NCBI GenBank assembly: GCA_048013815.1
Contig: CM106585.1
Location: forward strand, 7,812,001 to 7,876,000
Direction of reading: 5' to 3'
Length of the DNA stretch: 64,000 bases
From: Setoptus koraiensis
Lineage: Eukaryota; Animalia; Arthropoda
The notes under the pieces are model-generated. The model ran no database searches. It was not told the DNA's origin and saw only the letters and a list, made by a program, of their open reading frames with translations. Shown here piece by piece: positions 48,852 through 51,545 of this stretch (positions are counted from its first letter, which is position 1; each line of letters begins with the position of its first letter). Both the position numbers and the translations under genes were made by a program.

Positions 48852-48858
48852 TATAAAA
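48852..48858 (+). promoter_or_regulatory. Candidate TATA box of the small secreted protein gene
   Basis: GTATAAAA ~130 bp upstream of ATG 48980. Confidence 0.45.
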
Positions 48859-48979: not shown

Positions 48980-49486
48980 ATGAAGAATACAATGAAAGTG
49001 GTTGCAGCAGTTTTACTGTTGACAATTGTTTGTGGGGTCGCATCAGCAACACTAGTTGATAAGTTAAAAAATAAATGTACCGGTTGCTTCAAGCCGTCCC
49101 CGACCCACGAAACTCCCGATGAACAGCACCATTCAGAGTCAAAAGAAAAACATGATGAAGGTAAAGACGAAAAGAAAGAGGGACTAGCGGATAAAATTAT
49201 CGACAAGTTGAAGGACAAAGATTTTCAAGAAAAATTATTGGAAAAGGGCAAAAAGATGCTCGATAAGAAGTCAAAAAAAGGAAAAGGTGAAAAATACGGA
49301 GAGCATGAAGACCGATACGAGAGAGAGGAATACGGAGATGAGTACGAGAGAGAACACGAACGTTCATATGGAAGAGAAGAACACGAAGGTTCATATGGGA
49401 GAGAGTATGAAAATTCGCGGCGCGAGGAGAGCTTTCGACGTTCAGATAGTTCGAGTAGTTCAGATGGTGGTTACGACTCCGATTAG
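48980..49486 (+). CDS. Secreted hydrophilic protein with KS-type dehydrin-like layout
   Basis: Signal peptide MKVVAAVLLLTIVCGVASA, K-segment-like EKKEGLADKIIDKLK, a Lys-rich stretch, YG(R/E)E repeats, and C-terminal RRSDSSSSSDGGYDSD. The CDS is well supported; the family assignment is tentative. Confidence 0.75.
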   Translation: MKNTMKVVAAVLLLTIVCGVASATLVDKLKNKCTGCFKPSPTHETPDEQHHSESKEKHDEGKDEKKEGLADKIIDKLKDKDFQEKLLEKGKKMLDKKSKKGKGEKYGEHEDRYEREEYGDEYEREHERSYGREEHEGSYGREYENSRREESFRRSDSSSSSDGGYDSD

Positions 49487-50018
49487 GAATGGTGAAATAT
49501 ATTATTAGTACCTATTATCCATATCAATCTAGAATCGATCTCCCATCTGATCATCGAGTCAGCTAGTTGGACGACGAAGCATGAGTTTTGCATTGTTTCC
49601 CTCCCTCACTTGATGACGATAGCTAGTGATTGATTAGCAGACAAAAAAAAACACAAATAAATACAAATAAATCATGACTTGGAGTGACAGTTTTCCTTTC
49701 TCATTTTCTCAACAAGTATTGTATGTTAAATAGATTATGTAGCTCAGACCTCTTTATTTGATGATAGAAAATTATGGTCTTGAATAGGTTTTAGGCTTTT
49801 CCGCCAGCATAATCATTTATGCCTTAACGTTCTCATTATTCTGGCTGCATCGTCAGCAGTGACGCTGATTGAGTGATTCCAGTCATCTCGCGCTTGATTC
49901 ACCAAACAGATGACTTTGAGCTGGTGAAACAATTAAACCGAATCGGTCGTTTGCTCTAGACCAGCCTTTTGCTGAACTATGACAACTATCAGATGACAAT
50001 AAGTGTTAACTTAAAATA

Positions 50019-51545
50019 ATGAGGTTCGGACACAAGAGGCACCAACTGACGTCAATTCTTTCATTTGTTGGACTAATTATGTGCACAAACGGATATTTAG
50101 CCAAGAAGATATTTGACATGACTTATGGGGGTTATGAATGTGTAGATTTCGAAGACCGAAAAACCTATAGCATAGTTGTGTCATACATCCACAACCATTC
50201 TGAATATATACATTTTGGTATCCCTAACTGTGGGTTCAAATTGGATCAAAACGGGCAAATGCCTCCAGCTAATGAGGGGATGGAATTGATTGTTGGTTCT
50301 TTCGATCTAGTTGCAGATGTGAAGATAACAGTCTATAGGTCTTATACATATTTTGCAGTAATATCCAATAGAATGGTACTGTCACCAAAGTTTTTTTACA
50401 TTAGTAACGTTACAAAATTGACACATTTCAATTATACCTGTAAAGAGGACATCAATGATTTGTTTCAGGACAACGCCTTTGAAGAATCAAAACCAAAACA
50501 GGCTTATTTATCACCAGCAAGAATATTCGATAGCTCATGGGACAGTGGTATGGATATGTTTTATACAATGACGTGTAATCACATCTCTCTAGGCAATACA
50601 CCGGGTCGTTATTTTCAAATAATGCCTCCGGCAAAAAGTAAAACTACTTTAAATATTGGTTTCTATTTTGGGTCTAATAGTAGTGAAATGACCACAACTA
50701 GTAGAAAATTCATTGTTAAGGATGGTCATTTCAAGTTTCCTTGTAATGGTACTTGCTGTGGAGATAAGTTACCGACGCTGGGCAAAACAGTGATTAGTAT
50801 AATTGGGTTTAAATTAAAAGGAAATTTAGAAAAAATGTTCGATAGACACGAAGAGATTATCAAGAATTGTCCGATAACGATAAAAATGGACCTAACTGAC
50901 GCATTGACTGATAAAGATGATGGTTTAGGCATTGAGAGGATGGCCCAATTGGGCTACAAATTTGAACAAAGCGGACCGAAGGATCTCTTTATTGATTGTT
51001 CAAATAACATTACATGTGGCTTAATCGCTTCTTCAAATCATCTCAAGTCCAATCTGAAAGCTATGTGTGAATTTCCAGGAACAAATGTTACTTCTATTCT
51101 ATTGGCACCCGATGTTAAACTTCCGTGTGAAAAAAAGAAGGGATCCCGATTGGGTCTTTGGCTAGCTGTGGCATCATTTGCAATAGTGTTCTTAGCAACA
51201 GTAATATATATGGTGTATTATTTCATGGTGCGCGGAGGAAACAATCGGGGTAGAGTACAAAAACGAGAAACACCGAGGATGAGATCCGGTCTGACGTTGC
51301 CAATGCAGCGCTTGAAAGCAGTGAATGCCATGTCGAGCGCCTCAGGTCCAAAGACCATTGCAAGCTCGATCACTATTGAAGGAGTGGCCAAGATGCCTAT
51401 TAGAAGCGCGGGAAGTGTTGACATATCTCGTGCTAGCAGTGTCTACAACCCAAACACTACGGGAAGTTCAGGAACTCTGAGGCCCACTATTAAGAAAGGT
51501 CTCGGCTTACCAAGACTTCCTAGAAGTCCAGGATTTTCTGCTTGA
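50019..51545 (+). CDS. Orphan type I membrane protein (508 aa)
   Basis: Signal-like N-terminus, Cys-containing ectodomain with several N-x-S/T sites, TM LGLWLAVASFAIVFLATVIYMVYYFMV, and a basic Ser/Thr-rich cytoplasmic tail. No family recognised. Confidence 0.75.
   Translation: MRFGHKRHQLTSILSFVGLIMCTNGYLAKKIFDMTYGGYECVDFEDRKTYSIVVSYIHNHSEYIHFGIPNCGFKLDQNGQMPPANEGMELIVGSFDLVADVKITVYRSYTYFAVISNRMVLSPKFFYISNVTKLTHFNYTCKEDINDLFQDNAFEESKPKQAYLSPARIFDSSWDSGMDMFYTMTCNHISLGNTPGRYFQIMPPAKSKTTLNIGFYFGSNSSEMTTTSRKFIVKDGHFKFPCNGTCCGDKLPTLGKTVISIIGFKLKGNLEKMFDRHEEIIKNCPITIKMDLTDALTDKDDGLGIERMAQLGYKFEQSGPKDLFIDCSNNITCGLIASSNHLKSNLKAMCEFPGTNVTSILLAPDVKLPCEKKKGSRLGLWLAVASFAIVFLATVIYMVYYFMVRGGNNRGRVQKRETPRMRSGLTLPMQRLKAVNAMSSASGPKTIASSITIEGVAKMPIRSAGSVDISRASSVYNPNTTGSSGTLRPTIKKGLGLPRLPRSPGFSA

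Follow-up and report, generated by a model that had tools for sequence, protein, structure and literature searches.

A K-segment-like helix in a predicted secreted, disordered protein of the mite Setoptus koraiensis, probably acquired by convergence within a mite-born family

Dehydrins are, to our knowledge, regarded as plant proteins and defined only by their K-segment, and we know of no effector that has been characterised in gall and rust mites. A gene of the mite Setoptus koraiensis, located in a 64,000-nucleotide stretch of contig CM106585.1 (positions 7,812,001 to 7,876,000, hereafter the window), encodes a protein that recalls a plant KS-type dehydrin, and this raises the question of where such a likeness comes from. 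A first-pass annotation of the window had described in this protein the architecture of KS-type dehydrins, and had proposed either horizontal transfer from a plant or convergent mimicry, with the caution that chance similarity due to composition was possible. As argued below, the gene probably belongs to a lineage-restricted family of secreted, disordered polyampholytes, in which a K-segment-like amphipathic helix was reached by convergence inside a family born in mites.

As shown in Table 1, the locus holds an uninterrupted reading frame of 168 codons on the forward strand, from an ATG at 48980 to a TAG at 49484-49486, preceded by a TATA-like box and followed by two polyadenylation signals. 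The TATA box and around 280 bp of the 5' flank are kept in a paralogous copy of the gene (L002), as seen in a DNA alignment. When the gene was compared by the Nei-Gojobori method with six relatives, including paralogues and homologues, dN/dS ratios of 0.14-0.37 were obtained; the ratios were 0.26-0.37 in each of the three protein regions tested, and 0.37 in the helix region (aa 57-99). Because of the intact ORF, the TATA box, the AATAAA signals and these ratios, we take the ORF to be, as far as its sequence can tell, a real, intact gene under purifying selection. The host genome has a size of 48.8 Mb in two contigs, and the GC content of the gene is that of the DNA around it. This compact size and the lack of introns in the genes are in keeping with what has been published for eriophyoid mites (PMC7738191). 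The next gene in the 3' direction is a 508-aa ORF at 50019-51545 of the same strand, in which an N-terminal segment is hydrophobic, N-x-S/T sites are numerous and a transmembrane stretch lies at the C-terminal end.

Table 1. Position of the gene, its DNA signals and the parts of its product in the window, with the basis of each assignment.
Feature	Position	Strand	Basis
Complete CDS, single exon, 168 aa plus stop	48980..49486	+	Sequence and translation
TATA-like box TATAAAA, about 120 nt 5' of the ATG	48852..48858	+	Direct sequence inspection
Pair of AATAAA polyadenylation signals (49656-49661 and 49666-49671), some 170-185 nt past the stop	49656..49671	+	Direct inspection
Putative signal peptide, aa 1-23, predicted cut after ASA	48980..49048	+	Sequence inspection; kept across the family (alignment A3)
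Family leader (aa 24-38, mature protein), with a short amphipathic stretch and CxxCF(K)	49049..49093	+	Family alignments
Acidic His-containing spacer, aa 39-63, predicted disordered	49094..49168	+	AF2 pLDDT <50 for aa 40-64; composition
K-segment-like amphipathic helix EKKEGLADKIIDKLKD, aa 64-79	49169..49216	+	Shuffles, hhalign, BLASTP, AF2 helix aa 69-77
Second Lys-rich amphipathic helix and Lys/Gly cluster, aa 80-108	49217..49303	+	AF2 helix aa 80-101; hydrophobic moment 0.68
Acidic Tyr/Glu/Arg-rich repeats, aa 109-150, from tandem duplication	49304..49429	+	Tandem Repeats Finder
Ser5/acidic C-terminal tail, aa 151-168	49430..49483	+	Translation; Ser run p=8e-4 vs shuffles

The predicted signal peptide, judged by inspection, has a basic n-region, a hydrophobic core of 14 residues and ASA at the predicted cleavage site, in agreement with the secreted protein with a clean signal peptide that the first-pass annotation had described, all of whose quoted motifs were located where it had placed them. 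The mature chain begins with TLVDKLKNKCTG (aa 24-35), and after the leader comes a stretch rich in His, Glu and Lys (aa 39-63). The 15-residue segment EKKEGLADKIIDKLK, that had been likened to a K-segment, occupies aa 64-78, exactly 49169-49213, and the helix containing it shows an 11-residue hydrophobic moment of 0.67. A Lys cluster spans aa 90-104, the longest contiguous Lys run in the protein being 2, and the Tyr-Gly-Arg/Glu repeats are present too. In the repeat block, Tandem Repeats Finder detected a 27-bp unit present 2.2 times at 49346-49405 and a unit of 12-15 bp at 49315-49353. The tandem duplications of this block (49304-49429) are recent, and many of its Tyr are flanked by acidic residues, a context that favours tyrosine sulfation in secreted proteins. 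Ser/acidic tails are also found in the homologue P0001 and the paralogues L003 and L004.

The mature chain comprises 145 aa, 51% of them charged, with a GRAVY of -2.0 and a pI of 5.5, and its charges are arranged in blocks, in such a way that an acidic N-terminal part with His and CxxC is followed by a basic centre and this by an acidic Tyr/Glu/Arg/Ser tail with a net charge of -10. AF2, run with the family alignment as input, gave a mean pLDDT of 55, and beyond the signal peptide modelled helices at aa 69-77, 80-101 and 141-155 only, so the protein is predicted to be mostly disordered with two Lys-rich helices in its basic centre. The protein had no match in a Pfam scan or in a sequence search of the PDB, and no usable match in the ESM Atlas.

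The combination of an acidic pro-region and a basic helical core is a layout of linear venom and defence peptides of chelicerates, and the order of charge blocks in the mite protein, together with several dibasic sites, would suit the precursor of a cationic membrane-active peptide, antimicrobial or cytolytic, whose acidic pro-regions neutralise the basic helical core until processing. However, the net charge of the central region is only around +3 to +5, about 26% of its residues are hydrophobic, on average it is about as hydrophobic as dehydrin K-segments or less so (-0.16 to -0.56, compared with -0.21 and -0.29), and a clear processing or amidation motif is not present, so that we concede a very slight probability to a precursor of this kind.

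The likeness to dehydrins was studied with a reference set of six distinct KS-type dehydrin ORFs, including Arabidopsis HIRD11 (AtHIRD11), that were retrieved from plant DNA in metagenome contigs with a DNA pattern degenerate for the peptide DKIKDKIHG. The ORF at L034:1547-1840 has the very sequence that Table 1 of PMC3617826 gives for AtHIRD11. The environmental contigs L024-L035 (Ga0315915, Ga0209282, Ga0041059 and others), of around 30% GC, hold intact plant KS-type dehydrin genes, among which is the exact Arabidopsis HIRD11, and for this reason they are taken as host-plant DNA.

When the mature protein was compared with AtHIRD11 by BLASTP, the sole part aligned was EKKEGLADKIIDKL with EHKEGIVDKIKDKI, showing 9 identities in 14 positions (E=0.005, for a single comparison), and the alignment of the mite family with that of the KS-dehydrins by hhalign covered 18 columns at the K-like site (P=3.4e-4, probability 37.8%). 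Ungapped tests were also carried out against two published 15-residue K-segments, with global, local and hydrophobic-pattern-keeping shuffles as controls. The K-like 15-mer reached a BLOSUM62 score of 40 with the AtHIRD11 K-segment (p=1.5e-4 for global and p=0.0013 for local pattern-keeping shuffles) and of 35 with the canonical K-segment (p=7.5e-4 and p=0.010, respectively). With the AtHIRD11 segment taken from the retrieved sequence, none of 20,000 shuffles reached the observed score, the p-values ranging overall from <5e-5 to 0.01. The K-segment reading of the first-pass annotation thus stands above composition-shuffled controls.

A dehydrin needs at least one K-segment, whose descriptor is XKXGXX(D/E)KIK(D/E)KXPG, with (D/E)KIK(D/E)K as the core (PMC8961592, PMC5415607). 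The mite segment KKEGLADKIIDKLKD fits 7 of the 10 defined positions, and its core DKIIDK 5 of 6; KIK lacks its second Lys, and the PG at the end is missing. The mean hydrophobicity and the hydrophobic moment of the helix resemble those of K-segments. Within the family, the best K-like matches are those of the window gene, the L002 fragment (13 bits once the bias is corrected) and P0001; L003, P0002, P0003 and L004 give weaker ones, and L005, L006, P0004 and P0005 have none. The closest relatives keep a G-hydrophobic-x-D-K-x-hydrophobic-x-K-L-K-D-K-x-F pattern followed by the second helix, the dehydrin KIK core not being kept, and a terminal PG/HG is not conserved in the family. As far as the sequences tell, the likeness of the first helix to the dehydrin K-segment is specific but short.

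A pure coincidence, in which an orphan low-complexity protein would resemble dehydrins without any functional meaning, has to be weighed here. The likeness is mostly compositional, the K-like match was picked post hoc from a very large scan, and even generic Lys-rich helices of the paralogue L004 score 32 with the canonical K-segment; but the helix region is under purifying selection, and the G-hydrophobic-x-D-K...L-K-D-K-x-F pattern is conserved among relatives, which makes a meaningless resemblance improbable.

The full KS architecture was then put to test. Smith-Waterman alignments of the window protein with dehydrins look collinear over 65-100 residues, with z=1.8-3.1 with respect to global shuffles. 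Nevertheless, the protein scores as high when its blocks of 10, 15 or 20 residues are permuted as in its native order (p=0.20-0.39), among the 720 orders of its six natural segments the native one takes rank 267, and the protein read backwards still scores 62-81 against dehydrins, compared with 79-92 for the native one. Likewise, an HMM of the six KS-dehydrins gave 43 bits to the window protein before correction and 0.9 bits after it, the bias accounting for 42 bits. P0001 alone keeps a modest order signal, formed by the K-like helix, KKKK and the Ser/acidic tail (p=0.003-0.025, block permutation). Because permuted and reversed versions align about as well as the native protein, and 0.9 bits are left after correction, the dehydrin likeness outside the K-like helix is attributed to shared composition, in accordance with the caution expressed in the first-pass annotation.

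The examination of the individual segments led to a similar picture. An N-terminal H-segment of 15 residues (G3, K7, I8, H13, G15) is present in all KS-dehydrins (PMC8669000). It is absent from the N-terminus of the window protein, where the best match to the AtHIRD11 H-segment falls on the K-like helix, at aa 66, and none of positions 1-17 of the KS-dehydrin HMM was aligned. Between K and S, all 33 KnS dehydrins bear a Lys-rich (PK/B) segment with at least 4 contiguous Lys (PMC5415607). The match of the window protein to the AtHIRD11 PK segment is below compositional significance (p=0.19), with a longest Lys run of 2 against 4-5, so the poly-Lys segment that had been proposed finds no support, although P0001 does carry the KKKK. 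Regarding the S-segment, the protein ends in SSSSSD and its Ser5 run exceeds that of shuffled controls, but the match to the AtHIRD11 S-segment, in a protein with 15 Ser, gave p=0.08. The composition is also different: His represents 4.8% of the window protein and Gly 9%, compared with 13-20% and 15-26% in KS-dehydrins, and it contains 2 conserved Cys as well as 8 Tyr and 10 Arg, residues of which most KS-dehydrins have none.

The Pfam dehydrin profile PF00257 found no match at E<=10 in the protein or in the whole genome, and true KS-dehydrins, AtHIRD11 among them, fail too (best E=0.83); for this reason the Pfam negatives say nothing on KS membership. The trouble of PF00257 with KS-dehydrins was likewise pointed out in PMC8669000. 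Taken together, what survives of the dehydrin-like reading is a secreted hydrophilic protein with a K-like helix, while the KS-type architecture as a sign of relationship has to be abandoned, given the rank of the native order, its permutation p-values of 0.2-0.4, the absence of the H-segment and the bias-corrected HMM score.

The general resemblance to KS-type (H-K-S) dehydrins such as HIRD11 is that of small, extremely hydrophilic, disordered proteins, with a GRAVY of -2.0 here compared with around -1.9 for KnS dehydrins (PMC5415607), dehydrins having more than 40% of charged residues (PMC12862871). Both have a Lys-rich amphipathic helix of very similar sequence followed by a Lys-rich stretch, a C-terminal Ser run with acidic residues, and a single-exon gene. 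In contrast with KS-dehydrins, the mite protein starts with a signal peptide followed by a CxxCF leader, is devoid of an H-segment, and shows a DKIIDK core in place of DKIKDK without the terminal HG/PG, a shorter Lys run, and a 42-aa Tyr/Glu/Arg repeat block without counterpart, and its alignment to them lacks order-dependent signal.

The origin of the protein is better understood through its family. Members were defined by a signal peptide followed by K-x-x-C-x-x-C-F within around 15 residues of the cleavage site, as found in the window protein, and around seven genes of the S. koraiensis genome share both elements, a profile of the leader alone finding 7-8 loci. C36 and F37 are invariant in the 11 sequences of alignment A2, whereas C33 is kept without exception only among the five closest relatives (alignment A1), L005 and P0005 having Phe there. 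The paralogues in the own genome are L002-L006, the closest being L003 (148 aa), L004 (209 aa) and the 5' fragment at L002; L005 and L006 resemble the window protein in the leader only, with quite different tails. The signal peptide and CxxCF leader also head unrelated tails in L005 (G000:C1:19112333), L019 (G000:C1:19111046), L006 (G000:C2:18722504), P0004 and P0005. One such leader-headed protein has 303 aa with repeated helices of the ELKENVINILQKNLAE type, and two leader-headed genes with unrelated tails lie around 1.2 kb apart. By its occurrence in these sequences, the leader behaves like a putative shared secretion module.

An exhaustive HMMER profile search with the family alignment as query against 1.84 billion representative proteins (cut-off E<=0.001) produced five matches, P0001-P0005, all from the Logan assembly SRR33593474 and all with a signal peptide and a CxGCF leader. 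There were no plant proteins among the matches, in a library that may or may not include KS-dehydrins. The five proteins lie on genomic contigs of SRR33593474 that are 68-83% identical in DNA, in patches, to the S. koraiensis genome, and therefore this assembly is assigned to a second, related species. In word-index searches, the whole protein matched only P0001, as did the family profile at E<=10, and region 57-168 gave no match at E<=10. P0001 looks closest to the paralogue L003. Of the homologues and the synteny that the first-pass annotation had suggested looking for in related mites, the former appeared as these five proteins, whereas no synteny was detected when the window was compared with the SRR33593474 contigs. 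The best matches lie in this way in an unrelated arthropod family from one related assembly, an outcome that the same annotation had named as contrary to its reading. On the sequence data, the gene belongs to an orphan family of secreted polyampholytes, seen only in two mite genomes, with around seven genes in S. koraiensis and five in SRR33593474.

A further observation concerns the paralogous copy L002. At L002:1447-3039 on the forward strand (G000:C2, about 22538357-22539949), the 5' part of a paralogue is joined in frame to a complete phosphoglycerate kinase (PGK) ORF. The captured part spans around 280 bp of promoter plus 5'UTR and roughly 95 initial codons, which cover signal peptide, CxxCF leader and K-like helix. 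A PGK copy that is not fused, 99% identical, lies in tandem 2.2 kb upstream (G000:C2:22536445-22537692), and the captured fragment shows a dN/dS of 0.37 with respect to the window gene. This fusion is a candidate for a young chimeric gene encoding a "secreted PGK".

The horizontal transfer from a plant that had been proposed can be judged with these data. It would require that a KS-type dehydrin entered an ancestor of the eriophyoids long ago and later acquired a CxxCF leader behind a signal peptide as well as Tyr/Glu/Arg repeats, while its H-segment, its abundance of His and its poly-Lys run disappeared. Such a history is possible in principle, because short disordered proteins lose sequence signal fast, and it would be consistent with the 9 of 14 identities to the K-segment, unmatched by any of the 20,000 shuffles, with the hhalign P value, with the order signal in P0001, and with the fact that KS-dehydrin genes are single-exon ORFs, as the window gene is. 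However, the similarity is confined to around 18 columns, with an hhalign probability of 37.8%; the window protein carries no order signal, and its bias-corrected HMM score is 0.9 bits; neither the defining KIK core nor the terminal PG/HG is conserved in the family; and the composition is unlike that of dehydrins, with a GC content that matches the surrounding DNA. Moreover, no plant match appeared in the search of 1.84 billion proteins, where the only relatives are the five of one related assembly, headed by a non-dehydrin leader, and this leader is common to members without K- or S-like parts (L005, L006, P0004 and P0005). Plant-to-mite transfer is consequently unsupported by the sequences, and we consider it very improbable, even if the strong 15-mer match and the order signal in P0001 may reflect a very old common origin with dehydrins.

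Once secretion is assumed, the protein could also be a salivary effector delivered into or onto plant cells, where a short linear motif imitating the K-segment of the host would let its helix engage the same anionic lipids or partners as the dehydrins of the plant and alter stress or defence responses. The predicted secretion signal, the specific K-like helix kept in the window protein, the L002 fragment and P0001, and a leader that stays constant while the mature part diverges, a combination shared with effector families, would agree with this role. In the mite Aculops lycopersici 612 secreted proteins have been predicted, more than half of them lineage-specific (PMC7738191), and the window protein is like those in being small, secreted, without outside homologues and encoded by an intronless gene of a compact genome, although no K-segment-like helix was described there. 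An A. lycopersici orthologue was not retrieved from the libraries searched, which may or may not include its proteome, and a full-text search of the literature found no paper mentioning both "dehydrin" and "eriophyoid". Against mimicry, the family is small and under purifying, not diversifying, selection, and the window protein fits the KS-type K-segment better whereas P0001 fits the canonical type, and therefore no particular host target is indicated. An effector acting in this manner is thus rather unlikely.

The simplest account of the sequences is that one subgroup of a lineage-restricted family carries a Lys-rich amphipathic helix of low hydrophobicity that has converged on the K-segment, and convergence on such a helix is plausible. 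In a bolder version, a working K-segment would have arisen in an animal on its own, or come to it by a very old acquisition, and would act outside the cell, so that the protein would be a secreted functional analogue of plant KS-dehydrins, serving a plant-parasitic mite either as an effector on or in host cells or as an extracellular protectant against desiccation and freezing; this seems unlikely to us. Animal LEA proteins are other non-plant hydrophilic disordered proteins that have been proposed as protectants, and they are not known to carry a K-segment-like sequence. The fungal DprA/B, also non-plant, highly hydrophilic and disordered, are proposed protectants named by resemblance and not by homology (PMC3103405), but in contrast with the mite protein, which is predicted to be secreted, these dehydrin-like proteins are defined by DPR repeats and are devoid of K-segment-like sequence (PMC3103405).

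Under convergence, a role can be proposed by analogy with the established behaviour of K-segments, which form helices on anionic lipids and protect membranes and enzymes (PMC8961592, PMC8669000). Outside the cell, the two Lys-rich helices would fold on anionic surfaces, either membranes or polyanions, and cations could be bound, and the chain kept in solution, by the acidic, His and Ser parts, in such a way that the net role may be that of a dehydrin- or hydrophilin-like, surface-binding protectant or of a secreted modulator. Saliva, the coat of eggs or spermatophores, and the cuticle are candidate sites of secretion. Phosphorylation of the Ser tail is unsupported: no match to Fam20C (PF06702) was found in the genome, control genomes being equally silent.

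As the finding stands, its value is mainly one of caution, since an apparent shared "architecture" of charged disordered proteins can be wholly compositional, and Pfam PF00257 is unable to decide on KS-type membership either way. If the main explanation is true, convergence on the K-segment would have a clean example in a secreted protein of an animal, and the protein would be a tractable candidate for studying self-protection, or the manipulation of host cells, by gall and rust mites.
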